From Bugula neritina (taxonomy: Eukaryota; Animalia; Bryozoa): a stretch of DNA of 64,000 bases. Below are positions 21,801 through 52,363 of this stretch, in pieces; the stretch's first letter is position 1; every line of letters starts with the position of its first letter. The stretch is from positions 3,935,538 to 3,999,537 of the forward strand of contig OZ037772.1 in assembly GCA_964035545.1 (NCBI GenBank), in the 5' to 3' direction. The translations under genes and the position numbers were made by a program. Below the pieces are notes generated by a model. It worked only from the letters and a program-made list of their open reading frames with translations, ran no database searches and was not told the DNA's origin.

Positions 21801-24800
21801 AACAGTAAAAGAGGAAGTAAGTTTGTCAGCATTAAGGTTTGTGTGAGACAGAAGTGGATAGTGCAGGAGTTTTTAATTTCCCAGTGTTATGTTGAATATT
21901 TAGTATATTTCATCCTTCAAGTGTTTGTTTCCTTGATAAGATGGTATAGGCATAGCTTTAACTCAATGGTGTCCCACCTTTTTTATACCATCCCCCTTTT
22001 TATAAATGTTTTCTATTAAGTTTCTGCCTCTTTGATAAAATTGTAATTTTTATTTGTGAAGAAAATCTGAGACATGGGTTGTTTTCCTAATAATTTATTG
22101 AGTGTAAGTAAAGGCCAGTGTGTTTGACATGGACCAGTGTCTGCCACAACTTCAGTTCAGCTTTGAAAGCATTGATGCTGCTATTAAAAGCAGTGAGTTG
22201 ATGATTATACTCATTCATTTTAGGTTCAAAGTTTTTAGTACAGCAAATATATCTACTAGGTATGCAATAAGTAGTTTATGGAGATCAGATTGACTCACTG
22301 CAAAAACTTGCTGTTGGTTTTTACTTTCAAGAAACTTTTTAACCTCCATTCATAGTAGGAGGGGTAGCAGCTAGGGTAGAAAAGGAAAAGGCACTTTGTG
22401 TTTGACATGGATCAGTGTCTGTCACAACTTCAGTTTAGTTATAGTTATACATATACATGTAACCTGGAAAACAAGGCAAGAGCTCAAAGAGCTGGTAAAC
22501 TGTGTGAACTTTTGAGAAATGAAACCCCTGAAAAGCCCAAATTCCCTGCAAGGGGAATCCCCCAAGGTTGGGAGTCACTGCTCTAACATTTTCAATTATA
22601 TTATTCCAAGTGCAGCAATTAATGAGCTAACCTGTGAAATATTTATAGTCCAACCAACTGTCTACTTATTACATAGTATGTGTATAGTGATACATCATCA
22701 ACCTGTAGTTACAGGTAGTAGGTGTAGAATAAGTACAATATCATATGTAAAAATGCTTTTATAAATAGTGTGATTTTATGTATACAGAGGAGACAGTAGC
22801 ATCCCATGACTTGGCATCTTTGAGTGATTTGTCTTGTGAGTTACGAGAAAGTCTGACTAGTGGGATAGAGACTCTGTCTGAGAAAGTTGCAGAGTTGAAT
22901 GACATCTCAAAGGATGCCTGGAAAGAACTGAGTAAAATAGAAGATGAAGTGAAGAAGATGGTTGCCAGAGTAAACGCTGTAGCTGATGCTCAGGTATGCT
23001 GACATGGTGATATCATCTAATGTATTTCTGTTTGGCTGAAATTATGTTATGCATCTGGTCTTTGAGTTTTAATCAGAAATGAATTTCATTTGCCACTAGA
23101 ATTAACTGACCATTAAAGTATTATCATTCTGTGAACAAGTAGCAGTAGTCATTCATCACATGTTACTCAGTGCAGAGGAACCTGTCAATACAGATGACTC
23201 ACTCATCTTTCTGTAACTGTCAATCACTCGCACAGAGAGGTTGGCTGTGTGAGTGATTGACAGGTGTCAGGAGGAGGAGACTAGTCACGTGGTGTACTAG
23301 CTCTCTGATGTGTATAGAGTGTCACGTGACTGAGTCATTGTCCACTCAGTGGGTGATCTGTTATTTTCATTTCAAGTGCAGAGGTTGTGAGGTGCAGATG
23401 TGGTTACACTGTGTTACTATTTATTAGATAGAAAAGATTAGAAAGAGAGCTACAAACCTGAGGCTAGAAATATATGGATATTTGAAGAGCTGCACACAGA
23501 TAGTGGATAATTATAGAATAGAGCTGGCCTTGAGTAAGACAATGGGCAGACAGTCTCTGCTGGACACAGTACAACATGCAGTTGATAAGTTCAATGATGC
23601 AGGGATTGTGAGAGACTACAAAGAGATGAGTGAGAAGATGGAAAAGGCTACAGATATTGGTGTAATAGAGAAGTGTGTACTTCCAGACAGCATCTTGGTA
23701 CCAACATGTAGGTGGAGTCTATAAATAGTAACACTAACTATAAATAACTTTCTGCTTGTAATCATGTGAGTTGCTTTCACTGAATATTTAAATAGTAGAA
23801 TAAGTAGATAGAGTTTATTTATTAGAGAATGAGTTTTGTTCTACTCTCACATTATGAGACATTTCTGCAGTGTTTCAGAGTTTATGGTGTATAAGTGAGC
23901 TGCTAAACTGTGTTATGCTGACTACCTGCTGTCAGTATTAACAAGATATTCTCACTTAGACCTGTGCATCACGTAGCAACTTGTAGTAACTACAGACTGC
24001 TTGTATTTAAAACATCTTTTAGTTTTAAGTTTGAAAAGCTGTTCCCACCTCCTCAGGTGATGAGATTCTCAAGTTATAGAATTGTTATTTTGTTGTTGCA
24101 GACAGTGAAGACAGTCTGGGACTGAAGCTGCTGCAGCCACCATCTTCTCTACAGTTTGATGGATTTCCTGTACGTGGCTGGTGTATCTCAGTAAACATCT
24201 CAGCTGATGGACATCTGATGTGTCGGACACAAGAAGGTGTAGAAGTAATAAATAGAGAGACTCTGGATACTATCAGCTCAGTGAAACACACCAACACTAC
24301 ATGGTGGGAGGAGATAATCCAACCTGAAGGGGTGATGGTTGGCAGCTGGTATAACTGGGAGGAGGAAACAGCTGAAGTCTCACTTCTTGATCCGAACTCC
24401 TTTGAGAAGACTCGCTCTCTCTACAAGCATTCAGTAAATGAACCCACTTACTATAGAATAGCTCAGCACGACTCACTGCTCTATATTGTAGACAAGAGAG
24501 AGAAACAGCTGGTAGTCTGTAACCTAGTTGACAATAAAATACAGAAGTTCCCACTTCCTGAGATGAAGGACCCTTACCCTGTATGCATCCTCCCAGACTC
24601 AACTCTCCTCATAGGAGACTACACTGCAGATGGTAAAGTGAGAAGATATAAAGTAGAGAACACAACTCTCACTCTAATGTGGGAGTTCCCTCGCATCTCA
24701 CTACCATCTGGTATTTCCTTTGATCCAACATCTGAACTGATTCACATCTGTACACTGAGTGGACCTCTCCTCATCCTCTCACTTGAAGGTAAATACTCTG

Positions 24801-25937
24801 TTTATTATAGTAAGTTTATTTATTTTATATATAATTATGTTGCAGTAAATAATATATTTTAATAATTAACAGTAAACAACTTCCACTCATAAGATATATT
24901 ATGATATTGTAAGTATTTATCAAGTCACTGATGTTATTTTTAGCTAAAAGTTATGTAATAAAGACTGTAACATGCTGATAGTAGATGTTATATTCTTCTT
25001 CACATGACTTGTAGCTAATAATAATATTAGTGAATAATACTGCCTCCCTGCAATAAGTTTATTTCCAGCTGCAGTAACATGCAGGATGTAAGCACAGGTA
25101 GAAGTGTGTATTATATTGTATAGGTTTAAGTTGTACTCTGTGTAGTGTGCAGTGAGCTCTTAGTTAACTCTCTATTCAGTCTTCCTTTCCAGGGGTTCAC
25201 CTGGTAGTGTAGAGGATAGGGACTCCACACTGCTGAGTGAGTTGGTGCTGCAAGGGGTTCAAACCCACCTATCAGCATGTCTAGTTAGTATAATATGCAA
25301 GTGTTTTACACTAATTTAAGAGGTGCTCAGTCTAACAACTGTACAGATTGCCAGCTACACATGAGTTATGAGTTGTAGTTTGACTTCAGTCTAGTGCTGC
25401 TGTTGTTTTGGTCATCAGATAATTTAAATATAAATAATTTGATACTTTTTGACTGCCATTACTGAGACTATTGTAATTTGATGATGGCTGGTAGAGCAGT
25501 GTTTTCTGGTGGGACTCAGGTGGCTGCGGTTGGTTCTTGTCAAGTATTTAATATGTGATAATGTTGGAGTAGCTGCAGTAGTAGCCTATAGTATTAGAAG
25601 TAGACATGTGGGTGTGTTCTTGCTCAGAGCCACAGGCTAAGTTTGTGGGTCAAGGTCAATACAGTTGTATAAGGAGGCACTATTTTCTGCTGTTTAAATA
25701 TTTACTTCATGCATGTAACCTGCTGAGTTCCATCTTTAAAGGCAGTCTGTCTGTTTCTCTCAATACACCAACTGATACAATATGATGCTATTATTTACAG
25801 GTCAACTGGTGCTTACTTTTCCCAGAGAAAGTCTTGGTGTGAGTAGCAGGGTGTGGGACATTGCTGTGTATAACAGAGACACAGTGTTTCTAGCATGTGA
25901 AGATGGTGGACTTAGGAGATACACAATAAAATACTAA
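18895..25937 (+). CDS. TRIM-NHL-like E3 ligase, paralogue A (620 aa); exons 18895-19076, 21140-21320, 21518-21707, 22788-22993, 23428-23707, 24102-24788, 25801-25937
   Basis: All introns are GT-AG with compatible phases, 1863 nt in total, no stops. RING CGYC..LPCLHVYCMRC..CAYC, B-box1 CDVC..C..CQQH, B-box2 CEHH..CSKC..CMRC, coiled coil, propeller repeats (P.PVCILPDSTLLIGD, PSGISFD, VWDIAV). AATAAA at ~26115. Confidence 0.9.
21964..22580 (-). mobile_element. hAT/Charlie-like deletion derivative in TRIM intron 3
   Basis: Termini CAATGGTGTCCCACC / GGTTGGGAGTCACTG, degenerate 8-bp TSD (ctttaact/ctctaaca), internal minus-strand remnant AYLVDIF..LNL..INAFKAELKLW. Confidence 0.65.
25192..25280 (+). 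mobile_element. tRNA-derived SINE-like head in TRIM intron 6 (paralogous copy ~51620-51710)
   Basis: A-box-like TAGTGTAGAGG and B-box-like GGTTCAAACCC, with no cloverleaf. Confidence 0.35.
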
Positions 25938-27519
25938 ACTTATCAACTACAGTTTACTAATAATCAGCTCAGTGAGGTACTGAGAGATAAACTGGATAAT
26001 ATTTGTCATCAACATAGTTGGATTCATTACAATTCATCATTACACACACTCTGTATTTATAGTTAGATATGAGATGTTTTACTGTATCAAATATATGTTG
26101 CCATTTTACTATCTAATAAAGTTTATTTGCTAGCGAAAATATAGTCTGTTTTCATGCCTCATTAGCTTTAGTTCAAGTTGAGTTCGCTTACTAAAAAATA
26201 ATCTTTACTGGAGCAGTAACTGTAAATGACTTGTCTGCGGGAGAATTTATTCACTGAATTGACATGCAGGTGCAAGTAACTCCAACATGACTAAGTAAAT
26301 TTATTCCAACCATTCACAATGTTATACATTCCATTGCTGTGCAAACAATAGCATTGAGTAGCCAATCAAATTGTTTCTTGTCATGCATTCAGGAATCTTA
26401 TAAATAATATATAAGGCAATCAACTAGATATAAACACTGTTTTACTCTACACATGAGCTGTCTGTGCTGCAGCTGCTTTGCGAAATGTGTGTAATTTGAT
26501 GAGTTTAGTTCAATTGGTTGCAGTTTAATTATGACATGTTCACCATTATGTAATATTAGAGGACAACTCCTCTCCAGTGTGCAGTGGTAGTATACTATTA
26601 GTCAAAGGGAGTGCTCAGTATAATATAAATAGCTGACCTCTCCTACACCAACACTCCTGAACACGGCCAGCCAGATGACAAGAACTCTTGAACACCACTC
26701 AGGTTAAGGGACTCCACCCACCCAGGCACCCCTGAACACCATCCAAGGCAGACGTGTTCTGGATCACAGTCTTAACTCCTCACAGACTAAGACAGGAGCT
26801 GGAGTCATCCTCACAGCCAAGCAACCCATGCCAATATACCAACCCTAGCTGACCTGAATACTACAACTTATATATAGTATTCGAAATAACTCCAAAGTAG
26901 CATATTTCTGTTAAAATAGCATTATTAATAAACAGATAAATTATATATTTATTGATTCAATCACTATTTGAGTTTTCAAATTGAAATTCAATAAGAGACA
27001 TCAGCAAGTAATAATTATATGTTATGTAATAATACATGCCACAAAAAAGCATCCTTATAAAATTTAACAAAATGTATTAGCAGTTATCTATACTGAGATT
27101 ATAATGTAATACTAATGTTGTGTAAAGTATTAAACTATCAACCACTCTCTCATATTATTATTTAACCTTTGACCTACAAACAATGATTAAATCATTTTCT
27201 TGTTGCTATACTGTCTTTTTTTAGTTGGCTCATAGAAACAGTTTCAATCTAACAATGTAGTGTTGATACGAATCAGAGAATATAAGCTCAACAATAAACC
27301 ATAAGAAATAATTATCCTCAATATCTTAAGGAATATTCCAGAGAACACTGCAGGCTAAGCTAAGATATTTTACAACTACATGCAGTTGACATATCTTCAT
27401 GAATTGTGGACCATTTTGGTGTTTCTGGGGGCACAGACAAGTTGCAATGACTCCAACAGAATTTTTTTTAGTAGGTTTCAGTTCATCTTGGATATATTAC
27501 AGCTTGTTGTCTTTTGGTG

Positions 27520-27800
27520 GAATAGTATTGATGATACACCACCTTGTTTGGCCCCAACAGTATTGATGGTAGACTACCTTGTTTGACCTCAATAGTGTTG
27601 ATGGTACACTATCTTGTTTGGCCTCAATGATGATACACCACCTTGTTTGACCTCAATAGTGTTGATGGTACACTACCTTGTTTGGCCTCAACGGTGTTGA
27701 TGGCACACTACCTTGTTTGGCCTCAACAGTGTTGATGGCACACTACCTTGTTTGGCCTCAACAGCTTTAATGGTACACTACCTTGTTTGGCCTCATTAGT
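27520..27800. repeat. 35-bp minisatellite (ACACTACCTTGTTTGGCCTCAATAGTGTTGATGGT)n
   Basis: About 8 degenerate tandem units; paralogous array at 53070-53335. Confidence 0.9.
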
Positions 27801-28629
27801 CTCGCTAATATAAAATTAAGAGCACAACTTGCAAAATTTTCCTAATTTAACTTGGTTCATATTATGATGTTAATATGTTGACATTTATAACCTCTGATAT
27901 ATTTCTATGTTTATAACCTATCAATATGCTCTGATCTACAGTCTTTATTGCCATTCAAGGTGTTGCTCACTGCTGGTCAACCCCATTAACCCCCAACTTA
28001 CTGTCTACATAGAAAACTGTCTACTCTCCCTCCATGGTACATAGCTCATACAATGTGTATAATTATTTGCTTTTGCACATTCATTACATAAAATACCAGC
28101 CATTGTGCTAAAAGTAGAGTTTTGTTGTAGTCTCACATATTGGAACATGGCCTTAAGATTTGTAATTTCTGAGGCTTTTATTAAGCTAATGCAGGAGAAA
28201 ATTGCTAAGAATTTACTGCAGTGAATCTTTTTATACACATTACTTATGAAATGCATATCTGTGGAATACTTGATCTACCCTGTATCATGTAAACTAACTT
28301 ACACACAAGTTACATACAGCTACTACTTGATAAGGAAGTAATAGACTTACACTAACAGAGTTATTGAAATGAAAAAGTAAATAATATTTAAATTGTGATG
28401 ACTAAGTAAGTGGATGAGTCATAAACCAGTCAAAAAATAATTTCGACTAATAAACTTTATTGAGTGAATGTGACTACAGAGTCTTGACAACATAGCAGAG
28501 TAAATATGTTACATAATCATTACTAATCAACATCAAATACTGCATATAAGCAGTGCAAGTCCTGTGAAATATATAATATTATACTGTGAGTAGAACACAA
28601 TATATTATATTTGACATGTACTATTGATG

Positions 28630-29460
28630 ACCTCACTGAGCTGATTATTAGTAAACTGTAGCTGATAAGTTTAGTATTTTATTGTGTATCTCCTCAGACC
28701 ATCTCCACATGCTAGAAACACTGTGTCTCTGTTATACACAGCAATGTCCCACACCAAGTCACTAACACCAAGACTTTCTCTGGGAACAGTAAGCACCAGT
28801 TCACCTTTAAAAAATGGGAATTGTTACCATCAGTTCACCTTTAAAAAATATAATGTCAGATTGAATCAGTTTGAGACAAACAGACAGACTACAGTGACAT
28901 CACAACAGCTGACACCACTACAAGCAAGTTTCTACTTTCTAGTAAAATAATATAGTAACTGAAATATATTCGATAATAATACAATAAATTTCAAATATAT
29001 TTCTCACTCAGAAAGACTTCCTTTAAAGATGCAACTAAGCAGATTATGTTGAAGATAATAAAGTTCTACCAGTCAGTATTGAATAATTCACTGAGCTGCT
29101 CTACTGTTTACTTCATAATAAATGACAACATGGAGAAACTCAACATAGAAATTTACCCCCTCAGCAAATATGATTATACAGGAGAGAAGATATATAATAT
29201 AAGTATTACATACATGAAGTAAATATTCCAACAGAAAATAGTGTCTCATTATACAACTGTATGGACCTTGACCCACAAACTTAGCCTGTGGCTCTTATAT
29301 AGAACACACCCACATGTCTACTTCTAATAATACTGCTACTGCAGCTACTCCAACATTATCACATATTAAATACTTGACAAGAACCAACCGCAGCAACCTG
29401 AGTTAAACCAGCAAACACTGCTCTACCAGCCACCATCAAATTACACTAGTCTCAGTAATA
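28630..29460 (-). pseudogene. Inverted fragment of a third TRIM paralogue (part of last intron plus terminal exon 28671-28804)
   Basis: Reverse complement resembles 25455-25980; the exon reads GELVLTVPRESLGVSDLVWDIAVYNRDTVFLACGDGLRRYTIKY*. No upstream exons found. Confidence 0.88.
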
Positions 29461-29769
29461 ATTACATAACATGAGTTATATTACATAATATAAGATATAT
29501 TACATAATATAAGATATATTACATAATATAAGATATATTACATAATAATTAATAAACTTTTTCTATAATGTATAATCTTTCATACACATACAGCCATTAA
29601 AACCTCTTGCCATTTAGTTTAAGTTTATCAATTTAGACAAAATGCATTTGATCTTCAGTCCCATGACTGTCAAAACAGCACATTTCACATTCATTGGTTA
29701 TACAAGAGATTGTTTCCCCAATAATAGCAGCGTTACTCTAAATTAAAAAACCACTATAAAGTTATCAGT

Positions 29770-30625
29770 TAATTAAACAGAGTCATCTAAAGGGTATAGA
29801 TATAGAATAAGTCAATTGAATAGAGTCATCTAAAGGGTATAGATATAGAATAAGTTAATTAAATATAATCATCTAAAGGGTATAGATATAGAATAAGCTA
29901 ATTAAACAGAGTCATCTAAAGGATATAGATATAGAATAAGTGAATTAAATGGAATCATCTAAAGGGTATAGATATAGAATAAGTTGATTGAATAGAGTCA
30001 TCTAAAGGATATAGATATAGAATAAGATAATTAAATGGAATCATCTAAAGGATTTAGATATAGAATAAATTAATTGAATAGAGTCATCTAAAGGGTATAG
30101 ATATAGAATAAGTTAATTGAATAGAGTCATCTAAAGGGTATAGATATAGAATAAGTATATTGAATAGAGTCATCTAAAGGGTATAGATATAGAATAAGTA
30201 TATTGAATAGAATCATCTAAAGGGTATAGATATAGAATAAGTTAATTGAATATAATCATCTAAAGGGTATAGATATAGAATAAGCTAATTAAACAGAGTC
30301 ATCTAAAGGATATAGATATAGAATAAGTGAATTAAATGGAATCATCTAAAGGGTATAGATATAGAATAAGTTGATTGAATAGAGTCATCTAAAGGATATA
30401 GATATAGAATAAGATAATTAAATGGAATCATCTAAAGGATTTAGATATAGAATAAATTAATTGAATAGAGTCATCTAAAGGGTATAGATATAGAATAAGT
30501 TAATTGAATAGAGTCATCTAAAGGGTATAGATATAGAATAAGTATATTGAATAGAGTCATCTAAAGGGTATAGATATAGAATAAGTATATTGAATAGAAT
30601 CATCTAAAGGGTATAGATATAGAAT
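29770..30625. repeat. 43-bp minisatellite (AGTCATCTAAAGGGTATAGATATAGAATAAGTTAATTGAATAG)n, ~20 units
   Basis: Direct reading; variant units recur about 9 units apart. Confidence 0.95.
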
Positions 30626-31057
30626 GGTAACCACAGACATCAGAAGAAGCAGAAGACACTTTCTACCACCAGACGTACCTCTTTGAAGGGAAGCTCCCCG
30701 AGTAGGAATTGTCCCATCATGACCATGCGGGCCACCCAGAAGAGGATATCCAGTCCAGTCTCTAGCAGAGTACCCGGGTAGTAGGCTTGCAGGTCGGGGG
30801 TGATATCTGGCCACCCCATAGTTGAGAAAGGGAATATTCCGGAACTAAACCAAGTGTCCAGCACATTTTCATCTGTATAACAGGCAGGAAATGGAACAAT
30901 GTTCAGAGTTGTCTTCTCTGACAAACTGAAACTGGGGTTAATTTACTCAAAGGAAATGTCTAGTCCGTGAAGAAAAGAAAGTAAATTATCAATAAGTAGT
31001 TAGAGAAATGTAGCTCGCTGCTTTACTATAAAGGAGAAGAGAAAGTTGGAGGTGTGT

Positions 31058-34997: not shown

Positions 34998-35282
34998 AAA
35001 GGGAATTCATAGTTTATCAATATAAACATAGTCTGTGGTAAATATTAGGTTTGTGCTAAACCCGCTTGCTTTCTGTAAATAACACAAGACAAGATAAAGA
35101 ATGAGTCATACCTCAGCCTTAGGTTGCCCCTGGATCTGCACAAAGTAGGCTGGTATTCTGTGCCCCCACCATAGCTGTCTGGAGATACACCAGTCCCTGG
35201 AGTTCCTCAGCCATTTGTACCAAGTGACTGTGTGATAGTCTGGTATGATCTTTAGCTTGCCTGATTCTACTACCTGCAGTAT

Positions 35283-38255
35283 ACATACTATGCTATAGAT
35301 ATACTATGCTATAGATATACTATACTATAGATATACTATGCTATAGATATACTATGCTATAGATATACTATGCTATAGATATACTATGCTATAGATATAC
35401 TATACAGTACTAATATATAATATACTATACAGTACTAATATACATACTATACAGTACTAATATATTATATACTATACAGTACTAATATATATACTATACA
35501 GTACTAATATATTATATACTATACAGTACTAATATACATACTATGCTATAGATATACTATGCTATAGATATACTATACTATAGATATACTATGCTATAGA
35601 TATACTATGCTATAGATATACTATACTATAGATATACTATACTATAGATATACTATGCTATAGATATACTATACTATAGATATACTATGCTATAGATATA
35701 CTATACTATAGATATACTATACTATAGATATACTATACTGTAGATATACTATGCTATAGATATACTATAATATATATATACTATACTATAGAAATACTAT
35801 ATACTATACAGTACTAATATATTATATACTATACAGTACTAATATATATACTATACACAGTACTAATATATTATATACTATACAGTACTAATATATATAC
35901 TATACAGTACTAATATATTATATACTATACAGTACTAATATACATACTATGCTATAGATATACTATGCTATAGATATACTATGCTATAGATATACTATGC
36001 TATAGATATACTATACTATAGATATACTATGCTATAGATATACTATGCTATAGATATACTATACTATAGATATACTATACTATAGATATACTATGCTATA
36101 GATATACTATACTATAGATATACTATGCTATAGATATACTATGCTATAGATATACTATGCTATAGATATACTATGCTATAGATATACTATACAGTACTAA
36201 TATATAATATACTATACAGTACTAATATACATACTATACAGTACTAATATATTATATACTATACAGTACTAATATATATACTATACAGTACTAATATATT
36301 ATATACTATACAGTACTAATATACATACTATGCTATAGATATACTATGCTATAGATATACTATACTATAGATATACTATGCTATAGATATACTATGCTAT
36401 AGATATACTATACTATAGATATACTATACTATAGATATACTATGCTATAGATATACTATGCTATAGATATACTATGCTATAGATATACTATGCTATAGAT
36501 ATACTATACTATAGATATACTATGCTATAGATATACTATGCTATAGATATACTATACTATAGATATACTATACTATAGATATACTATGCTATAGATATAC
36601 TATACTATAGATATACTATGCTATAGATATACTATGCTATAGATATACTATGCTATAGATATACTATGCTATAGATATACTATACAGTACTAATATATAA
36701 TATACTATACAGTACTAATATACATACTATACAGTACTAATATATTATATACTATACAGTACTAATATATATACTATACAGTACTAATATATTATATACT
36801 ATACAGTACTAATATACATACTATGCTATAGATATACTATGCTATAGATATACTATACTATAGATATACTATGCTATAGATATACTATGCTATAGATATA
36901 CTATACTATAGATATACTATACTATAGATATACTATGCTATAGATATACTATACTATAGATATACTATGCTATAGATATACTATACTATAGATATACTAT
37001 GCTATAGATATACTATGCTATAGATATACTATACTATAGATATACTATACTATAGATATACTATGCTATAGATATACTATACTATAGATATACTATGCTA
37101 TAGATATACTATACTATAGATATACTATACTATAGATATACTATACTGTAGATATACTATGCTATAGATATACTATGCTATAGATATACTATGCTATAGA
37201 TATACTATGCTATAGATATACTATACAGTACTAATATATATACTATACACAGTACTAATATATTATATACTATACAGTACTAATATATATACTATACAGT
37301 ACTAATATATTATATACTATACAGTACTAATATACATACTATGCTATAGATATACTATGCTATAGATATACTATGCTATAGATATACTATGCTATAGATA
37401 TACTATACTATAGATATACTATGCTATAGATATACTATGCTATAGATATACTATACTATAGATATACTATACTATAGATATACTATGCTATAGATATACT
37501 ATGCTATAGATATACTATGCTATAGATATACTATGCTATAGATATACTATACTATAGATATACTATGCTATAGATATACTATGCTATAGATATACTATAC
37601 TATAGATATACTATGCTATAGATATACTATAATATATATATACTATACTATAGATATACTATGCTATAGATATACTATACTATAGATATACTATGCTATA
37701 GATATACTATACAGTACTAATATATAATATACTATACAGTACTAATATATTATATACTATACAGTACTAATATATATACTATACAGTACTAATATATTAT
37801 ATACTATACAGTACTAATATACATACTATGCTATAGATATACTATGCTATATATACTATGCTATAGATATACTATGCTATAGATATACTATGCTATAGAT
37901 ATACTATAATATATATATACTATACTATAGATATACTATGCTATAGATATACTATACTATAGATATACTATGCTATAGATATACTATACAGTACTAATAT
38001 ATATACTATACAGTACTAATATATATATACTATACAGTACTAATATATATACTATACAGTACTAATATATATACTATACAGTACTAATATATACATACTA
38101 TACAGTACAACTATATATACTATACAGTACTAATATATATACTACACACAGTATTATTAGATATACTATACAGTACTAATAGATATACTATACAGTACTA
38201 ATATATATACTATACACAGTACTAATATATTATATACTATACATAATATATAATA
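35283..38255. repeat. Compound AT-rich minisatellite (15-bp TATAGATATACTATR-type blocks alternating with TACTATACAGTACTAATATA-type blocks) filling ValRS intron 12
   Basis: Direct reading; the paralogous intron 55718-55975 has only ~240 bp of the same units. Confidence 0.95.
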
Positions 38256-40560: not shown

Positions 40561-40874
40561 GTGTTGCGAGTGCAAAATATTATTAGCAAATGATGTTAGC
40601 GTTAAACTTTACTGCTCGCCTACAGACGTTTGTTTTTAAACAGCGTCACCGGGCAAAGTAATTTGGATATTATAAAAGCGGAAATGCAAAATATATAAAA
40701 CTGTTTTAATTCAGCTCGCTAGAAGTTGAATAGTAAATTACAATAAAAATAATTTGATAAGTTTTGCTGTAAATTTGTTTCCCCAACCAGCATATGTCAG
40801 TAAAATATAAAAGTTCAACATTTAGGCATGCAGTGATATATAATATTATAAAGCATATTATGTTGGTGACATGT

Positions 40875-41670
40875 AATACAGTATATTATGTTATACAGTG
40901 TATAATGTCATACAGTATATTATGTAATACAGTATATTATGTTATACAGTATACTATGTTATACAGTATTCTATGTTATACAGTATACTATGTTATACAG
41001 TATACTATGTTATACAGTATACTATGTTATACAGTATAATATGTTATACAGTATACTATGTTATACAGTATACTATGTTATACAGTATATACTATGTTAT
41101 ACAGTATATACTATGTTATACAGTATACTATGTTATACAGTATACTATGTTATACAGTATACTATGTTATACAGTATATTATGTTATACAGTATACTATG
41201 TTATACAGTATACTATGTTATACAGTATACTATGTTATACAGTATACTATGTTATACAGTATATACTATGTTATACAGTATATACTATGTTATACAGTAT
41301 ATACTATGTTATACAGTATATACTATGTTATACAGTATACTATGTTATACAGTATACTATGTTATACAGTATACTATGTTATACAGTATACTATGTTATA
41401 CAGTATACTATGTTATACAGTATACTATGTTATACAGTATATTATGTTATACAGTATACTATGTTATACAGTATACTATGTTATACAGTATACTATGTTA
41501 TACAGTATACTATGTTATACAGTATACTATGTTATACAGTATACTATGTTATACAGTATACTATGTTATACAGTATACTATGTTATACAGTATACTATGT
41601 TATACAGTATATTATGTTATACAGTATACTATGTTATACAGTATACTATGTTATACAGTATATTATGTTA
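40875..41670. repeat. 17-bp minisatellite, copy B (~47 units)
   Basis: Same unit as 2650-5625. Confidence 0.97.
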
Positions 41671-41831
41671 TAATAATCAACATACAAATGAGATGCTCTT
41701 GTCAGTCTATAATGATGAATATTATACACTGGAACTGGGTTACTCTCTCACCTCCCCTCACCTTAGCTCAGCTGGACCAGATCTTCCCATTTTCCATTTT
41801 CATTGGAATGACATAATTGAAAAAGTTAAAG

Positions 41832-42153
41832 CAGTGGCTCCAACCTTAGGAGAATTCCCCTTGCAGGGAATGTGGACTTTTTAGGGGGTTTCGTTTCACA
41901 CAGTTTGTTACCAGCTTTGAACTCTTGCTTTGTTTTCAAGATTACATGTACTGCATATGTATAACTGCAACTCCTCCATAATCATAATCTTATATTATAA
42001 TCAAATATACTAGAACAAGTATATAGACCTATACTGTATATTATAATTTTCATCATAGTTATATAAATTTCATTTTTAGAAAGAAGGGAAATTAATAGTA
42101 AACAGTTATGGAAGGGGAGATGATATGGTACATGAAAAGGTTTGGAACCACTG
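41832..42153. mobile_element. Short hAT/Charlie-like MITE
   Basis: CAGTGGCTCCAACC ... GGTTTGGAACCACTG termini, related to the element at 21964-22580. Confidence 0.5.
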
Positions 42154-42574: not shown

Positions 42575-42752
42575 CCTTTGACGTGATTATTATAGAGTCG
42601 AGTCGAGTGACGTGTAATAATCCTTCTGCGCGCAGAACTTCCTCGTTATTTTGGTTTTATTGTGCCTCATCTTAGTTACTACTTACTAGTAATAAATACT
42701 AGTTACCAAGTTTCTTACCAGTTTACAGACTGACACTATTGACTCTCGTGAG
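42575..42752 (+). promoter_or_regulatory. Candidate promoter and non-coding first exon of TRIM paralogue B
   Basis: Local CpG enrichment, two TGACGTG motifs, palindrome TTCTGCGCGCAGAA, then donor GAG|GTGAG at 42752. The ATG exon is preceded by an acceptor, so an upstream exon is expected. Confidence 0.4.
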
Positions 42753-45228
42753 GTGAGAGCAGTTTGAGTCATCTCATCATTTCTCAAATTTTATCAGGTA
42801 CTCGTACTTTAATACTTGCAGTTAGATTTACTATTTTACTTTTACTTTTAGTATTTACTATTTTAGTATTTAGTATTTTACTATTTTAATTCTAGATTTA
42901 CTTTTACTTTTAGTTTTAGTTTTACTTTTAGCCTTTAGGCTTTAGGTTTAAGTCTAGGCTTATAACTTATATAATATCAATATAGGATTAAGCTTAACAC
43001 TACGTTATATTTAAATTATAAGTTGTATAAATTAAAATTCTTACAGTTGATGTTATAATATTAATTAAATATAATTGTTTCTCTTTCAGTCTTTGATTTG
43101 AAATTTACAATAGACATAGTAATACCATAGCTCATAGGCATATGATCTATAATTAATTAATTATAATGATTTATCGAATAATATAAATATGAATATCGTA
43201 TTAATGATATTAAATTTATTATTATTATAAAAAATTTAATCGACTTCAAGTTTAGGTTCAAGTTTTAATACTGAAAAATTGATCTTCTAGTAGTAGTACT
43301 AGTACTACTACTACTACTACTACTACTATTCATATTGTGCCTCATCTCAGTTAGGCCTACTAGTTACCAAGTGTCCGACCAGTTTACTGACTTAACACTA
43401 TTGACTCTCGTGAGGTGAGAGCATTTTGAGTCATCTCATCATTTCTTAAATTAATCAGGTACTTTACTACTTACAGTTTCCGTTAGATTTACTAATTACT
43501 TTGTCTTTTAGACTAAGAGTACTACAATATGACTATGAGTATGACTATGAGTATAGACTATAGTGTATACTATTACTATTAGTATTAGTATTACTATTAG
43601 TATTAGTATTACTATTATAATTTGTATTGTTGTACGAGTAATTAGTATTATCATTCTTTCACTCATTGCACTACATTTACTATAACTATAAGTATAATTA
43701 TAACTATAAACTTAAAGTGTAAGTTACTATATTAATATTACTGCACTACTATAATTGTCAGTATTACTTTTAGCGTTGCAGTTGGTCTTACTGCCAGTGC
43801 CAGGTCTGCTACCAACATCATTAAATTTAGTTATAATGATAATATTGCCATTCGTGATTATCCCACAATATTATTGATTATCGACATAGCTCGACTTTGT
43901 TAAGTCAATATTTGACAAGTTGGTTTTATAATGCTAATACCAATAGGTTTATTATAACCAGTGAGTCGCTTATTTTTACTTTGTGAATTTATGATTGTAG
44001 CATTATCATACTTATAATATTTATTGCAAATTTTTGAATTAATGTTACACTTACTCAATTTGAATATCAGAATATCTTACCACTGGCACTAGTCAGTTAT
44101 TAATTAATGACAGTGCATAGTGATCACTGCATGTGATACATTGTCATACCCTGCACATCCCAATGCACTGCCCTTCTGGATTCATTGTGAATAGCGTATT
44201 CGGTTGGCTTATATTATTTTACTCAGCGTTGATTATACAACTAACATGTACTACACTGCTCTAATTTATGTAACAATGCTTGCTAGTTGCTGCTATCTTT
44301 ACCTCTATATTTCTGTCATTCAAAGACTAATTACATAATAGGTACATAATTGGAATTTGACTATTCTATAAATTACTGAGAATATAAGGTTAGCCACATT
44401 TATATGATGTACTCTTGTTGTAGACATAAAATATGAGGTTAGTGTTGATAAATCATTTGCTAGGTAAGAGTGTAGAATAAATAATTGACTAGAGATGAGT
44501 GTAGAAGCTGCCAACTCATGAAACAACTGCACCTGACCTAACAGAAGCACAAACATGTTAGATTAGTATGTTCCACACCACCATAGTTTCTATTGGATGA
44601 TTAGAATAGCAAACTAGCCGTTGATGGCTTTTTCCCTGGCTGGTGGAAGGATGACTCTAAGTAACATATTAATATCTTGGTGTGTTAGTGGATCAGAATT
44701 TGAGCCCACGCAATGTATCTAGCCCAAAAATGGGCAGGTAACATTGTAAAACTGGCTGATATCTTTGAATGAGGGGATAAGCAGCGTAGCCCAATTGTGC
44801 TGTTTGTTCATAAAAGTAATACATAACTCACTGGTATTCATGTTTCACTTCTCTATATATTAAAAACAATTGAATAGTGGTGTTCAATAGAAGTAGAATA
44901 ATAGTGTTCACTGAAGCACACAACATTGCTTCATATTTATTGTATAAGGAGTTTGAGTCACCAGCAAAAACCTATTCAGTGATTACAATGGAAACAATAC
45001 AGCCTTTGTTAGAGAGTTAAAGCTGTGAGCTCAGCATGTTGTAGCTGACTATCATGTATACCAGTCTTATTAACTGCCTTTGTTTAACATTATTCTTCAT
45101 GTCTTTATTTTGTATGGTTTATTGTTAATGGTTAAGTCTTTGATTTGGAAACCTTCACAGATGTAGTGTGAAATATTATGCTAAGAGTATGTGTATCTTT
45201 TACAGGATTTCCTTATTATATAACCAAG

Positions 45229-48200
45229 ATGGCAGAATCCAGAGTTGTGAAAAAGAGACTAAACAATTCGTATCGCTGTGGGTACTGCTCGCAGTACTTC
45301 AACAAACTTGAAGATCCCAGAACTCTGCCCTGTCTGCATGTGTACTGCATGAGATGTTTGAAGACTGACATCGGTGGTAGGAAGGATCATATCAGATGTG
45401 CTTATTGTAGGTGAGTTACAGTACATAACACAATATATCATGTCATAGGCTTGCATATGATTTTCTCACTCTCATCTAGGAGTTGTCTGATCTATGTCTA
45501 TGAAAAGCAAACAATACTGTATATTCTATGTGAACTCTGGTTACTAACTTGTGGAGTGTGTGGATATCTTTTCATCAGGTAGAGAAAGTAACTGTTATGT
45601 AGATTGCACCATCAGCTGTCCTCTCTTGTTGAATTGTGGTACTGTTAGATGTCATGGGATTGGGGTTGTCTCCTCACTATATTATTTTGTTCTCATACAG
45701 TACAAGACTTGTTAGACCAACCTTTTTCATATCATCCCCACTTTCATAAATGTTTACTATTAATTATCCCCCCTTTAAAAAACGAAAAAATTTATGACTG
45801 ACATAATGATAATATAGATTACTATGCAATATTTTTCCTATTACATTTGAATATAATATAGTTATTTCTGATAATTATATTATGCATGTATAAAACACAG
45901 AGCAGTTCAATTATTAATATTATGGCTGCAGCTGATGACAGTGTACCAGCTTGCTTTCAAACCTCCCACCCCAACCCCTAAACCCCAACCCCAATATTGT
46001 AATTAAAACACATTCATGTAGAAGTAGACTGAGATGGCAGAATTGGTTAAATAGATAAGCTAAGATGAAGGCTTATAGATATACATGTACATGTAACTTG
46101 CAAGAGCTCAAAAGTCTTTAAGAAACTGCTTGAAATTTTTAAAATCGAAATCCAGGCTCGCCCTAAAAAGCCCAAAATTCCCTCTTATAGGGGGATTCTC
46201 CCAAGTTGGGAACTACTGTGTTGAATTGACTTGTGTTTACTATTTCTTTCCTGCAATTAGAAATATGTATGATGTTGTCATGACAACAGAGTTGCTGTGG
46301 CACAAAGTATAGTTTACTAGTATGTAGTGATTGTGTAGTGAGAGTGGAGTGTCTGGTTATTGTCCATGGTTATGTGTAATCTGTAAGGAATAGAATTATA
46401 TTATTTTAATATAATGTTGAGAGAGGTACTTTTATAATGGCAGTTTGCTAAACAGCTTTAGTTCTAATGCGATAGACTCATAGCTCTGGAGTCTAGCAGC
46501 TGCTACTATTACCACTAGCTGTTCAAAATTCGACCAACATCCGGGCTGCCAAAGTGTAATAGCCATTGACAAGGCCAAGCAGTCACTGGGAAATTATTTG
46601 ACTAAAGAGCAGGTGTTATGACAATTAGACAGGAATCAGTGATTCTGTGACCTATTTAGTTAAATCCAATGCTGACCTTTTGATTGATTATTAGATAGCC
46701 ATCACAATTTTATTTGGTACAATATAATATTATGGGGTGTCAATCAGTGTCTAATATAATCTGTGAATTGAGTGTCTACTTTAGTTGTTACTTCTTCTAC
46801 CATCAGTCAGTTGTATTGAGTGTTACTCTGTATTGAGTCATTAATAGTGTTGAGGATTTGGGCCTATATTATGCCACCCCCCCTCTCTGACTTAGACTGA
46901 GACCCAACCTGCTGCACATACATAGTAGTACTACACTGAAGATAGTTAACATGTGTATGTGTCATCCTACTAGTAATGGATTACTAAGTACAACTTATCC
47001 TACGACTCCCTCTTTTTATGCTAGCTGCACGAGATAGGCAACTCACGCGTGACACGCACTCACAGTGCACTAGCTCTTGAAACATTGCCAAGGATGATGA
47101 AATGACAGTTTCGCGTCACTCCTAGCAGTTAGAGTGGCAGGGAATAGTTGTAGTATGTTGTAGTATTGGCTCTTCAGAATTCACTCCTCAGTAATTAGTT
47201 GCATTGCACAAACTTGCAACAAAAGTGAATAAATATTGACAATATGGCCTCCACTCAGTAGTTAACTAGTATTTTGTCTTGTCATTTTACAATACAAGTT
47301 ACAGTTGAGTCTATTTGTTGAGTAGCAGTTCTTTGTCATGAGTGACTATTTTACAGCATATTAGGTACATAATATAGTCAAGTGTGTTTATGTGATAGCC
47401 TGTGGTCTATATAATGAATGTGTGTTGATGAGTGATGAGTATTTATTTGAGTATTTGTCAAGGACACAGCTGTGTGTGTGGATGGAGTATTTCATTACTT
47501 GAGATATACTAAACACAGGTAACACAGGTAACATACTGATTGCTATATATTGTAGGAAAGATCACTATGACATCACGGATCCCACAACACTACCAGTAGC
47601 TCAGCATGGAGACCCCTTAGAATACAAGTCTCCACCCAAACCTGCACCCATTCCCTGCGATGTGTGTAAAGGTGGAACACAAGCTGCTGTGTTCTGTGTC
47701 GACAGTCAAAAGAAATTGTGTCAGCAGCATCAAGAAGTGAGTCTTTCTTATGTCATGTCTCAAGATTAGTTACTAAACCAGTTCTGGTTTGTATGTAGAA
47801 TATTATTGAAAAGAAATGTTGAGTCTGTGTGACTTTTTATACTAAACACACAGTTTCACAGTGCAGTGAGTCAACTATGACAGACTTGTTGGTGAAAATA
47901 CAACCAACTAAACTGTTGACCTTTATTATACAGAATCACAGAGAGCTGATGGGAGATAGACATCAGTTTATTGACATCGAGGTCTACAGAGCTTCTCCCC
48001 AAAGATATACTATAACTGAATGTGAACATCATAAACAGGAACAGCTGACAGAAGTGTGTTCCAAGTGTCACCAGATATTCTGTATGAGATGTGATATGAG
48101 GACTGGCTGTAAGGATAAGACTGCAGGTATTTACTTGTTGTTTCTATTTCTGTAGGAAGAAACTGAGAAATATTACAAGAACCTGTTATTTTATTATCTT

Positions 48201-51200
48201 ATTATTAAAGTGAGTTATGTAACAGTAAAAGAGGAAGTAAGTTTGTCAGCATTAAGGTTTGTGTGAGACAGAAGTGGATAGTGCAGGAGTTTATATTCTC
48301 ACTGTTATGTTGAATATTTAGTATATTTCATCCTTCAAGTGTCTGTTTCCTTGATAAGATGGTATAGGCATAGCTTTAACTCAGTTGTGTCCCACCTTTT
48401 TCATACCCTTCCCCTTTTTATAAATGTTTTCTATTAAGTTTCCCCCCTTTTGAGAAACACTGTAACTATTCATAAAGAAAATCAGGGTACAGATTTTTTC
48501 CAGAAAAGGCCAGTGTGTTTGACATGGACCAGTGTCTGCCACAACTTCAGTTTAGCTTTGAAAGCATTGATGCTGGTATCAAAAGCAGTGAGTTGATAAT
48601 TATACTCATTCATTTTAGCTTCAGGTGTTTTAGTACAGCAAATATATCTACTAGGTATGCAGTAAATAGTTTGTGGCGATCAGTTCTACTGACTGCAAAA
48701 ACTTCCTGTTGGTTTTTACTTTCAATAAACCTTTCAGCCTCCATTCGTAGTAGGAGGGGGGGGGGTAGCAGCTAGGGTAGAGTGAATATTAGACACATGG
48801 ATGTAGAAGTAAACTTAGATTGTAGAGTGTAATGTGGATAAATAAATGAACTACATAAAATAAAGTAGTTATAATTATACATAATCATGTAACCTGGAAC
48901 ACAAGGCAAGAGCTCAAAAAGCTGGTAACAAACTCTGTGAAATTTTAGAAATGAAAACTCCTAAAAAACTCAAATTTCCTGTGAAGGGGAAATTCCCCAA
49001 GGTTGAGAGCAACTGCTTTAATTTTTTCAACTATTTCATTCCAAGTGCTGTGAATATCAATTACATCTTTCTAGTCCAAGTTCAACTGTCTAGTTATTAC
49101 ATAGTATGTGTGTAGTGATACATCATCAACCTGTAGTTACAGGTAGTAGGTGTAGGATAAGTACAATGTCATATCTGAAATGCTTTTATAAATAGTGTGA
49201 TTTTATGTATACAGAGGAGACAGTAGCATCCCATGACTTGGCATCTTTGAGTGATTTGTCTTGTGAGTTACGAGAAAGTCTGACTGGTGGAATAGAGACT
49301 CTGTCTGAGAAAGTTGCAGAGTTGAATGACATCTCAAAGGATGCCTGGAAAGAACTGAGTAAAATAGAAGATGAAGTGAGGAAGATGGTTGCCAGAGTAA
49401 ACGCTGTAGCTGACACTCAGGTATGCTGACATGGTGATGTCATCTAATGTATTTCTGTTTGACTGAAATTAGGTTTTGCATTTGGTTTTCGAGCTGTAAA
49501 TAGAAATGAATTTCATTTGCCACTAGAATTAATTGGCCATTAAAGTATTATCATTCTGTGTACAAGTAGCAGTAGTTATTCATCTCATGTTACTCAGTGC
49601 AGAGGAACCTGTCAATACAGATGACTCACTCATCCTTCTGCAACTGTCAATCACTCACACAGAGAGGTTGGCTGTGTGAGTGATTGACAGGTGTCAGGAG
49701 GAGGAGACTAGTCACGTGATGTACTAGCTCTCTGCTGTGTATAGAGTGTCACGTGACTGAGTCATTGTCCACTCAGTGGGTGATCTGTCACTTTCATTTC
49801 AAGTGCAGAGGTTGTGAGGTGCAGATGTGGTTACACTGTGTTACTATTTATTAGATAGAAGAGATTAGAAAGAGAGCTACAAACCTGAGGCTAGAAATAT
49901 ATGGATATTTGAAGAGCTGCACACAGATAGTGGATAATTATAGAATAGAGCTGGCCTTGAGTAAGACAATGGGCAGACAGTCTCTGCTGGACACAGTACA
50001 GCATGCAGTTGATAAGTTCAATGATGCAGGGATTGTGAGAGACTACAAAGAGATGAGTGAGAAGATGGAAAAGGCGTCAGATGTTGGTGTAATAGAGAAG
50101 TGTGTACTTCCAGACAGCATCTTGGTACCAACATGTAGGTGGAGTCTATAAATAGTAACACTAACTATAAATAACTTTCTGCTTGTAATCAGTTGAATTG
50201 CTTTCACTGAATATTTTAATAGTAGAATAAGTAGATAGAGTTTATTTATTAGAGATTGAGTTTTGTTCTACTCTCACATTATGAGACATTTCTGCAGTGT
50301 TTCAGAGTTTATGATGTATAAGTGAGCTGCTAAACTGTGTTATGCTGACTACCTGCTGTCAGTATTAACAAGATATTCTCACTTAGACCTGTGCATCACG
50401 CAGCAACTTGTAGTAACTACAGACTGATTGTATCTAAAACATCTTTTACTTTTAAGTTTGAAAAGCTGTTCCCACCTCCTCAGGTGATGAGATTCTCAAG
50501 TTATAGAATTGTTATTTTGTTGTTGCAGACAGTGAAGACAGTCTGGGACTGAAGCTGCTGCAGCCACCATCTTCTCTACAGTTTGATGGACTTCCTGTAC
50601 GTGACTCGTGTATCTCAGTAAACATCTCAGCTGATGGACATCTCATGTGTCAGACACTAGAAGGTGTAGAAGTAATAAATAGAGACACTCTGGATACTAT
50701 CAGCTCAGTGAAGGACACCAACACTACAGGGTGGTGGGAGATAATCCAACCTGAAGGGGTGATGGTTGGCAGCTCGTATAACGAAGAGGAGGAAACGGCT
50801 GAAGTCTCACTTCTTGATCCGAACTCCTTTGAGAAGACTCGCTCTCTCTACAAGCAGCCATTAGATGTACCCGCTTACCATAGAATAGCTCAGCATGACT
50901 CACTGCTCTATATTGTAGACAATATAGAGAAGCAGCTGGTAGTCTGTAACCTAGTTGACAATAAAATACTGAAGTTCCCACTTCCTGAGATGAAGAACCC
51001 TCGTCCTGTATGCATCCTCCCAGACTCAACTCTCCTCATAGGAGACTTCACTACAGATGGTAAAGTTAGAAGATATAAAGTGGAGAACACAACTCTCACT
51101 CTGATGTGGGAGTTTCCTCGCATCTCAGACCCATCTGGTATTTCCTTTGATCCAACATCTGAACTGATTCACATCTGTACACTGAGAGGACCTCTCCTCA

Positions 51201-52363
51201 TCCTCTCACTGGAAGGTAAATACTCTGTTTATTATAGTAAGTTTAGTTATTTTATATATAATTATGTTGTAGTAAATAATATATTTTAATAATTAACAGT
51301 AAACAACTTCCACCCATAAGATATATTATGATATTGTTAGTATTTATCAAGTCACTGATGTTATTTTTAGCTAAAAGTTATGTAATAAAGACTGTAACAT
51401 GCTGATAGTAGATGTTATATTCTTCATCACATGACTTGTAGCTAATAATAATATTAGTGAATAATACTGCCTCCCTGCAATAAGTTTATTTCCAGCTGCA
51501 GTAACATGCAGGATGTAAGCACAGGTAAAAGTGTATATTATACTGTATAGGTTTAAGGTGTACTCTGTGTAGTGTGCAGTGAGCTCTTAGTAAACTCTCT
51601 ATTCAGTCTTCCTTTCCAAGGGTTCACCTGGTAGAGTAGAGGATAGGGACTCCACACTGCTAAGTGAGTTGGTGCTGCAAGGGGTTCAAACCCACCTATC
51701 AGCATGTCTAGTTAGTTTACTATGCAAGTGTTTTACAGTAATTTTAGAGGTGCTCAGTCTAACAACTGTACAGACTGCCAGCAACACATGAGTTATAAGT
51801 TGTAGTTTGACTTCAGTCTAGTGCTGCTATTGTTTTGGTCATCAGATAATTTAAATATAAGTAATTTGATACTTTTTGAGTGCCATTACTGAGACTATTG
51901 TAATTTGATGATGGCTGGTAGAGCAGTGTTTGCTGGTGGGACTCAGGTGGCTGTGCTTGGTTCTTGTTAAGTATTTAATATGTGATAATGTTGGAGTAGC
52001 TGCAGTAGTATAGTATTAGAAGTAGACATGTGGGTGTGTCCTTGCTGAGAGCCACAGGCTAAGTTTGTGGGTCAAGGTCAATACAGTTGTATAAGGAGGC
52101 ACTATTTTCTGCTCTATTTGAGTATTTACTTCATGCATATAACCTGCTTAGTTCCATCTTTAAAGGCAGTCTGTCTGTTTCTCTCAATACACACCAACTG
52201 ATACAATATGATGCTATTATTTACAGGCCAACTGGTGCTTACTGTTCCCAGAGAAAGTCTTGGTGTGAGTAGCTGGGTGTGGGACATTGCTGTGTATAAC
52301 AGAGACACAGTGTTTCTAGCATGTCAAGATGGTGGACTTAGAAGATACACAATAAAATACTAA
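45229..52363 (+). CDS. TRIM-NHL-like E3 ligase, paralogue B (621 aa); exons 45229-45410, 47556-47736, 47934-48126, 49215-49420, 49855-50134, 50529-51215, 52227-52363
   Basis: Same structure as paralogue A with one extra codon in exon 3; 1866 nt, no stops, GT-AG introns. Confidence 0.9.
48382..49015 (-). mobile_element. hAT/Charlie-like derivative, paralogous to 21964-22580
   Basis: Same position and termini; TSD ctttaact/ctttaatt. Confidence 0.65.

Follow-up and report, generated by a model that had tools for sequence, protein, structure and literature searches.

The question raised by a tandem pair of tripartite motif (TRIM) genes in Bugula neritina is whether one half of the encoded protein has been held constant while the other half, a predicted beta-propeller, has been diversified as a recognition surface. 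The pair, here named copies A and B, lies in a 64,000-nucleotide stretch of the genome of this bryozoan (the window: assembly GCA_964035545.1, contig OZ037772.1, forward-strand positions 3,935,538 to 3,999,537). Coordinates below count from the first base of the window, while positions prefixed with C8 are those on the contig that contains it. The answer has two layers: (i) the evolutionary part, namely a constant half composed of a RING plus B-box and coiled-coil regions (RBCC), diversifying selection on one face of the propeller, and a large expressed family, is put forward with high confidence, and (ii) the whole statement, that A and B are two of about 100 related RING E3 ubiquitin ligases of the cytosol whose diversified top face would make them a repertoire of sensors, is considered probable, with considerable reserve.

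Copies A and B compared

The comparison of the window with itself by blastn disclosed two colinear blocks of 91–97% nucleotide identity (coordinates in Table 1), with satellite arrays and further repeats lying between them. Each block carried one intact gene of seven exons on the + strand, with every intron bounded by GT..AG: copy A at 18895–25937 (620 amino acids) and copy B at 45229–52363 (621 amino acids). The initial annotation, made from the letters of the sequence, had placed the pair at 24102–52363; both endpoints were well chosen, 24102 being the first base of the copy A propeller exon and 52363 belonging to the copy B stop codon, but the RBCC exons of copy A (18895–23707) were left out of that span.

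Residues 1–346 (residue 346 of copy A being the Tyr at the RNA-supported exon 5/6 junction) differed between A and B by eight substitutions plus one 1-residue indel (Ala185 in B), the RING being identical, while the last 274 residues, which make up the propeller, differed by 30 substitutions. The Nei–Gojobori method yielded different profiles of synonymous (dS) and nonsynonymous (dN) divergence for the two halves: (i) 15 synonymous and 8 nonsynonymous changes in RBCC (dS 0.074, dN 0.0098, and dN/dS 0.13) and (ii) 14.5 synonymous and 34.5 nonsynonymous changes in the propeller at residues 347–620 (dS 0.080, dN 0.057, and dN/dS 0.71), the contrast being significant (Fisher p = 0.005). The recount reproduced the substitutions, indel, identical RING, and approximately 30 propeller differences reported in the initial annotation, and its approximately 13 and 12 synonymous changes were close to those counted here. 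It had also drawn attention to radical multi-nucleotide codon changes and to their recurrence at two places per blade, and both were confirmed here: four propeller codons differed at two or three bases (E/W at 416, W/E at 432, Y/R at 505, and L/D at 547), and 22 of the 30 A/B propeller differences fell among the 31 codons found to be hypervariable across 27 paralogues (see below).

The A/B propeller dN/dS was not significantly different from 1 and did not exceed it, and thus a single pair could not tell relaxed constraint from diversifying selection. Moreover, A and B were not a simple recent pair but two members of a large family: over exons 5 to 7, they were not the closest relatives of each other, the nearest relative of B lying 2.5 Mb away at 0.48% divergence and that of A lying 3.75 Mb away at 3.5%.

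A large family with a constant RBCC half

The whole-genome search with exon 6 of copy A as the query returned 131 matches, of which 99 were near-full-length (52–100% identity) and 94 of these 99 had no stop codon. On the contig of the window, 56 copies with at least 83% identity were distributed between 4 kb and 4.40 Mb, and four copies at C8:4.66–4.70 Mb showed 65–69% identity to copy A exon 6; further clusters of propeller exons were located on contigs C2, C3, C1, and C4. The expanding family suspected from two copies had at least 99 members, a number much larger than the initial annotation could see. The RING exon was 100% identical at the protein level in 53 copies and 97–98% identical in about 20 more; since these included copies on C3 whose propeller exon was just 79–83% identical to that of copy A, the combination of a constant RBCC half with a variable propeller was a property of the whole family. 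Exon 5 of copy A likewise shared 98.2–100% nucleotide identity with other copies. Purifying selection has kept the predicted catalytic and scaffold half from varying.

Exons 5 to 7 were fetched from 30 loci, which comprised 27 intact copies, one with a disrupted exon 5 (L006 at C8:1.647 Mb, in which the first 107 nt of this exon were unrecognizable), and two with an internal stop (L023 at C8:3.797 Mb and L029 at C8:2.486 Mb, with one in-frame stop each). Separately, about 17 exon-sized matches with 24–29% identity to the propeller exon were found on both strands within 0.5 Mb at C8:6.71–7.21 Mb, and this cluster, judged by sequence likeness, is probably a second, distantly related array of propeller genes.

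Diversifying selection on the propeller

The selection analysis was applied to the 27 intact copies. The median pairwise nucleotide divergence was 1.4% in exon 5, 3.3% in intron 5, 6.4% in exon 6, 3.8% in intron 6, and 7.5% in exon 7: the propeller exons diverged at about double the rate of their introns, while exon 5, assigned to the putative coiled coil, diverged more slowly than the introns. Across the 351 pairs, the propeller had a mean dN of 0.073 and a mean dS of 0.061, with dN exceeding dS in 253 pairs, while exon 5 had dN 0.011 and dS 0.028 (dN/dS about 0.4). The fewest state changes on the tree amounted to 502 nonsynonymous and 109 synonymous ones in the propeller (per-site ratio 1.41) and to 30 and 20, respectively, in exon 5 (per-site ratio 0.40); the tree-free minimum states were at least 247 nonsynonymous and at least 69 synonymous in the propeller and 14 and 15, respectively, in exon 5.

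Tree-based testing placed 31 propeller codons (here called hypervariable) above the synonymous rate of the domain at q < 0.05, while 164 of the 280 propeller codons were invariant. These 31 codons had a nucleotide diversity of 0.41 at position 1, 0.41 at position 2, and 0.18 at position 3, the first two positions being about 12 times as diverse as neutral; over the whole propeller domain, amino-acid-changing diversity was about twice neutral. The neutral level itself was consistent among site classes: fourfold-degenerate diversity in the propeller was 0.035 (84 sites), and diversity in the two introns was 0.033 and 0.040. The third base was usually retained as the first two varied (TGG/CGG/GGG/GAG/GTG/CAG), as exemplified by residue 414, at which GGG, GTG, TGG, GAG, AGG, AAG, and TTG were found. 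Columns with a diversity above 0.3 made up 54 of the 544 first and second codon positions of the propeller versus 41 of the 1394 intron columns (p = 2.6e-9).

Such variation might also arise without adaptation, through relaxed constraint in the loops, decay of copies, or a local bias of mutation or conversion; the A/B ratio that did not differ significantly from 1, the three damaged copies among the 30 fetched, and the reticulate history of the array (see below) all agree with this possibility. Relaxed constraint, however, cannot raise amino-acid-changing diversity above neutral, as was observed both at the 31 codons and over the domain, and a mutational hot spot is ruled against because third positions were spared and fourfold sites matched the introns. 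Furthermore, the scaffold was constrained, as seen from its invariant codons and from a dN/dS of 0.41 on the bottom face (see below), and the great majority of copies were open, with transcription and splicing of the gene observed. An explanation without adaptation is already largely refuted, and we regard it as very improbable.

Location of the hypervariable codons on the propeller

The propeller consisted of six repeats, five of them being four-stranded blades in an AlphaFold2 model of exon 6 and the sixth being contributed by exon 7. This model was built from an alignment of 18 family members plus metagenomic relatives, and it displayed 19 strands arranged in four-stranded blades (predicted local distance difference test score 84.9; predicted template modeling score 0.83). 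In the NHL propeller of Brat, the b–c and d–a loops form the top surface, and the a–b and c–d loops form the bottom (PMC4015489, Fig. 5 legend). Residue classes were defined by the same rule from the strand list of the model alone, each loop including two adjacent strand residues on either side; as variability played no part in drawing up the classes, the dN/dS values obtained for them are not circular.

The top class (D–A and B–C loops) had 88 codons with 20 hypervariable sites and a dN/dS of 1.92, the proportion of nonsynonymous differences exceeding that of synonymous ones in 335 of the 351 pairs, while the bottom class had 76 codons with a single hypervariable site and a dN/dS of 0.41; the distribution of hypervariable sites between top and bottom, out of the 27 in the modeled exon, was significantly uneven (p = 2.4e-5). 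The four hypervariable codons of exon 7 were found, by sequence analogy, at the homologous places of blade 6. The strand register read PxG-I/V-x-x-D for strand a and x-I/L-x-V/I-x-D/T for strand b, with strand c following the variable loop, and it was confirmed by the agreeing profile alignment to PknD-derived repeats, in which "PrpvCiLPD", "stlligD", and "gkvrryk" were paired with "PNGVAVDS", "GTVYVTD", and "NRVVKLA", respectively. Diversifying selection acts on about 30 codons, which are situated in the D–A and B–C loops and where strand A begins. In Brat and TRIM71, these elements make up the top face to which ligand binds. The initial annotation had named scatter over the core or bottom face and the lack of a site class with dN/dS above 1 as findings that would speak against its proposal; what was found instead was a structure-defined class with such a ratio and a concentration of variable sites on the top-face loops.

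The family was also represented among metagenome relatives, in the consensus of which the unresolved positions were the same hypervariable positions. Four of these relatives (P0027, P0010, P0012, and P0031) had insertions of 10–45 residues in the D–A loop between blades 2 and 3 (copy A residues ~456–463), one insertion being a long Asp-rich run; thus, the top face varied in length as well as in sequence.

Protein kind and relatives

Exon 1 encoded a RING with the pattern C17-x2-C...C-x-H-x2-C-x2-C...C-x2-C60, which was recognized by the Pfam models zf-RING_UBOX (31.5 bits; cut-off 25.2) and zf-C3HC4 (23.1 bits; cut-off 21), and the nearest solved RINGs were those of TRIM56 and TRIM2, those of TRIM3 and TRIM32 being near as well. 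It was followed by two B-box-like Cys/His motifs at residues 95–131 and 151–180 (with a weak ANCHR-like B-box match in Pfam for exon 2) and by a region with weak coiled-coil-type Pfam matches in exon 4, exons 4 and 5 being poor in Pro/Gly and rich in helix formers. The Pfam scan of exon 5 matched no family at all and no filamin/Ig domain, for which the linker would be too short; the lack of a filamin domain, which TRIM2/3/71 have and TRIM32 has not, makes the architecture one of the TRIM32/TRIM56 type. No SPRY or PRY match was obtained in the Pfam scan, which assigned the propeller to no family.

For the propeller, the fold matches of the exon 6 model in VIA-align were headed by the NHL domain of TRIM71 (Z 19.0; root-mean-square deviation 2.7; 202 residues aligned), and further NHL matches were those of TRIM2 (Z 18.6), Lin41 (18.4), Mei-P26 (17.9), and Brat (17.1); Foldseek against the Protein Data Bank (PDB) returned generic propellers only, VIA-align being more discriminating. 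The family profile, when run against solved proteins, matched the PknD-derived design Pizza7H (E = 4.6e-12) and PknD (6.4e-6), with which it had the repeat register PxGVAVD / YVTD / NRVV in common. The neighbors in the Atlas according to a language model were NHL-annotated clusters, which we treat as a lead only. When 1.84 billion representative proteins were searched by profile, 66 matched at E ≤ 0.001 and no full-length relative was found; seven of the 66 reached E ≤ 1e-30, all seven being short, exon-sized fragments. The word search of proteins retrieved just unnamed metagenome fragments with 54–84% identity, and neither database yielded a full-length spliced homologue.

From these comparisons, the genes appear as a lineage-specific TRIM-NHL-like family with an architecture of the TRIM32/TRIM56 type and no orthologue among canonical TRIM-NHL genes. 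The canonical TRIM-NHL proteins (Brat, LIN-41/TRIM71, Mei-P26, NHL-2, and TRIM2/3/32), together with TRIM56, have the same domain order, and the loops that form the top face of the canonical propellers are those that vary in the Bugula family (PMC4015489). The canonical genes, however, are single-copy, slowly evolving, and developmental, with three in flies, four in C. elegans, and five in mammals (PMC4015489), while the Bugula family has about 100 fast-diversifying members and contains neither a filamin domain nor a Pfam NHL match. PknD, a sensor of Mycobacterium tuberculosis, and the Pizza designs were the only solved proteins matched by sequence, and this likeness concerns the NHL repeat, not orthology: PknD is a bacterial extracellular sensor and Pizza an idealized design, and neither has the RBCC half found in the Bugula family.

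Transcription and splicing

Contigs from one DNA run and three RNA runs (four studies) were aligned to 21100–25960 at a likeness of at least 97%. The contigs of the DNA run covered exons and introns alike, while those of the RNA runs covered exons and almost nothing else. The latter joined 21707 to 22788, 22993 to 23428, and 23707 to 24102, skipping three GT..AG introns of copy A, and for intron 6, loose contig ends at 24790 and 25799 carried the sequence of the opposite exon. Exon 6 had zero variant rows in two organism-labeled RNA runs, and thus a sequence identical to the copy A propeller exon occurs in RNA-derived contigs. Copy A is transcribed and spliced, and 94 of the 99 propeller exons are open, a state of affairs opposite to the untranscribed copy with relaxed constraint that the initial annotation had considered as counter-evidence.

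Reticulate history of the array

The family history was reticulate, the members being mosaics. Four-gamete failures did not decay with distance and implied at least 60 exchange events; a distance-decay test resembling the pairwise homoplasy index gave p = 0.47, incompatibility being already 27% at less than 20 nt, and gene conversion and recurrent mutation were not told apart by it. The simplest account of these mosaics is conversion between genes of the array, and recurrent mutation at selected codons may contribute.

Divergence did not increase with distance along the array. Neighboring copies such as A and B diverged by about 4–5%, while two pairs of distant copies were nearly identical over 2.9 kb including introns: L008 (C8:2.07 Mb) and L009 (0.69 Mb) at 0.08% divergence and L005 (C8:1.51 Mb) and L014 (copy B, 3.99 Mb) at 0.48%. 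Near-identity at megabase distances suggests duplication or conversion over a long range, with placement by the assembly as another possible cause. If the last of these were general, mis-assembled repeats or haplotypes would account for the number of copies or for the differences among them, and many repetitive sequences are indeed unplaced in the Bugula neritina assembly (PMC11480708). However, contigs assembled from short reads in independent studies of DNA and RNA reproduced the copy A propeller exon at 97% likeness or better with no variant rows, the metagenome fragments from other samples belonged to the same family and varied at the same positions, and the copies differed at many sites in an ordered and codon-specific manner, so that an assembly artefact as the source of the family is hardly credible.

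Points weighed against diversification of a TRIM-NHL-like top face

Several points weigh against the interpretation given above. With respect to protein kind, B-box 2 scored 23.1 bits with Pfam zf-B_box, below the cut-off of 24.1 (exon 3 alone scanned); the Pfam NHL model PF01436 had no match at E ≤ 1 in either propeller exon of A or in exon 6 of B; and the YWTD propeller of nidogen (Z 18.4) and PAL (Z 18.1) tied with the NHL matches within 1 Z unit. The NHL label is based on the modeled fold and on the profile match to the PknD/Pizza repeats rather than on the Pfam NHL model. With respect to location, the mid-strand class (40 codons) had six hypervariable sites and a dN/dS of 1.82, an excess explained by these six sites sitting inside strands; four of the six, at residues 3–5, adjoined the D–A loop and fell within the first half of strand A, which is the innermost. 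The assignment to the top face of the model is derived from strand order and profile alignment, and a "contiguous patch" is to be understood topologically, not geometrically.

With respect to sampling, the selection analysis covered exons 5 to 7 of the 27 intact copies among L001–L030, and the rest of the family entered through identity tables; the transcription evidence consisted of assembled contigs rather than reads and concerned copy A only. Two of the three RNA runs were labeled as RNA by guess, and they were taken as such because of their exon-only coverage and intron-skipping joints. With respect to history, 31% of the informative site pairs failed the four-gamete test, in introns as well as in exons; since the tree-based per-site p-values are inflated by such a reticulate history, the diversity ratios and the tree-free counts were relied on.

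Proposed function

Duplicated RBCC ligases with positive selection in the loops of the recognition domain are known from primate TRIM5alpha and TRIM22. The fish finTRIM proteins, as described in PMC2657112, are RING/B-box/coiled-coil ligases that have been duplicated, with conserved RBCC and positive selection in C-terminal recognition loops, and the same combination of expansion, conserved RBCC, and selected recognition loops is present in the Bugula family. There are two differences: (i) the recognition domain is B30.2/PRY-SPRY in finTRIM and TRIM5alpha but a six-bladed, NHL-type propeller, as predicted, in Bugula and (ii) finTRIM and TRIM5alpha are vertebrate, while the Bugula family is lophotrochozoan and, with about 100 genes mostly in 4.4 Mb, lies at the upper end of copy number. 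In the absence of B30.2, the Bugula family would work like finTRIM/TRIM5alpha without being a member of either group.

By this analogy, each paralogue would use its top face to bind its own variant of an intracellular target that evolves rapidly, and recognition would be coupled to ubiquitination (or signaling) through the common, predicted RING ligase half. The family would then constitute a germline-encoded repertoire of sensor ligases, as TRIM5alpha/finTRIM do with B30.2; the likeliest targets would be components, whether proteins or RNAs, of viruses, transposons, or symbionts, and exchange among array members would reshuffle loop variants. We consider the chances of a sensor–ligase function to be about even. 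As to the receptor–ligase system proposed in the initial annotation, its diversified recognition ligases have been borne out by selection on the top face and by the large family, while its immune or self/non-self sensor part is still inferred. A more elaborate version, in which about 100 cytosolic ligases with top-face loops continually reshuffled by short-tract gene conversion would form a combinatorial, intracellular library against viruses, transposons, or bacterial symbionts, possibly reading RNA, is offered tentatively.

The kind of ligand is where an overlapping explanation departs from that of sensor ligases: the proteins may, like Brat, LIN-41/TRIM71, and Mei-P26, be RNA-binding regulators, here diversified so that their top face recognizes many RNA motifs, for example in transposon or viral RNAs, or regulates endogenous mRNAs. 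The hypervariable positions were enriched in Trp (8-fold), Arg (3.4-fold), and His (2.5-fold), residues suited to base stacking and phosphate contacts, and the best structural matches were the NHL domains of TRIM71, TRIM2, Lin41, and Mei-P26. However, Asp, Glu, and Gly were also common at these positions, so the face is not uniformly positive, and the Trp/Arg enrichment is equally typical of hot spots between proteins. The top face of the TRIM-NHL propeller is an RNA-binding platform (PMC4015489), and we give RNA-binding regulation a minor but appreciable chance.

The N-terminus of the protein was hydrophilic, and the sequence contained neither a signal peptide nor a convincing membrane segment; a sensor acting inside the cell agrees better with these traits than does an allorecognition molecule of the cell surface. 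An allorecognition role, in which the diversified propellers would serve to distinguish the colonies or gametes of self from those of non-self, is suggested by the source being a colonial, sperm-casting bryozoan and by the extreme diversity at a recognition face that is typical of allorecognition loci. It is nevertheless unlikely: the protein is probably intracellular, while the known invertebrate determinants are surface or secreted proteins, and the diversity here is found between about 100 paralogues of one haplotype rather than between alleles of one or two loci.

Gene models and other features of the window

The exons of both copies and the duplicated blocks are listed in Table 1.

Table 1. 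Exons of copies A and B and the duplicated blocks that contain them (window coordinates)
Feature	Position	Strand	Basis
Duplicated block with copy A (first repeat unit)	16824–26547	+	blastn self-comparison
Copy A exon 1: start codon and C3HC4 RING (C17–C60)	18895–19076	+	Pfam; Cys/His pattern; nearest solved RINGs
Copy A exon 2: linker and B-box-1-like zinc motif	21140–21320	+	Cys/His pattern C95..H131; AG/GT boundaries
Copy A exon 3: predicted B-box 2	21518–21707	+	Pfam zf-B_box below cut-off; RNA joint 21707–22788
Copy A exon 4: predicted coiled-coil region	22788–22993	+	Weak coiled-coil-type Pfam matches; RNA joint 22993–23428
Copy A exon 5: predicted coiled-coil end and linker; constant control exon of the family analysis	23428–23707	+	RNA joint 23707–24102
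Copy A exon 6: propeller blades 1–5; 27 of the 31 hypervariable codons	24102–24788	+	AlphaFold2 model; fold matches; site tests
Copy A exon 7: blade 6 and stop codon TAA (25935–25937); 4 hypervariable codons	25801–25937	+	Loose RNA contig ends; site tests
Duplicated block with copy B (second repeat unit)	42697–52963	+	blastn self-comparison
Copy B exon 1: RING, protein as in copy A	45229–45410	+	
Copy B exon 2	47556–47736	+	
Copy B exon 3: 3-nt insertion at 3' end (extra Ala185)	47934–48126	+	
Copy B exon 4	49215–49420	+	
Copy B exon 5	49855–50134	+	Junction placed via homology to the RNA-supported copy A junction
Copy B exon 6: propeller blades 1–5	50529–51215	+	
Copy B exon 7: blade 6 and stop codon	52227–52363	+	

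The spacer upstream of each copy contained a 17-bp satellite array (2506–5625 and 40837–41672; units ~90–93% identical), and the apparent open reading frames of 244–303 amino acids at 40939–41884 were rejected as artefacts of this satellite. Further spacer satellites were found at 35243–38188, 55720–55970, 29635–30750, 57509–58429, 27494–27882, and 53021–53415, with units of 16 bp (having a higher-order structure of ~490 bp), 43 bp, 23 bp, and 35 bp; a 35-bp array was located directly downstream of both TRIM copies. A block at ~9900–16000 had a G+C content of 52–59% versus ~35% elsewhere, and it was flanked by a 300-nt direct repeat (9353–9652 and 16488–16787; 96% identity), which could be a pair of long terminal repeats.

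Significance

The search of a literature library found no paper linking Bugula and tripartite motif genes, and for bryozoans and molluscs, bivalves and oysters included, none that described arrays of hypervariable TRIM-NHL genes. In vertebrates, diversified TRIM ligases with a B30.2 domain are known to act as antiviral sensors, and bryozoan immunity is, to our knowledge, almost unstudied. The TRIM-NHL class has been regarded as small, conserved, and developmental (PMC2533329; PMC4015489). If the interpretation of A and B as members of a diversified sensor–ligase family is true, the NHL propeller would have been independently recruited, in about 100 copies and in a lophotrochozoan, as a hypervariable recognition module; such a family would be a propeller-based counterpart of TRIM5/finTRIM and would give bryozoans a concrete candidate receptor family. 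The array also serves as a clean natural experiment on selection versus mutation, with introns, fourfold sites, and a constant exon adjoining codons at which diversity is 12 times neutral.

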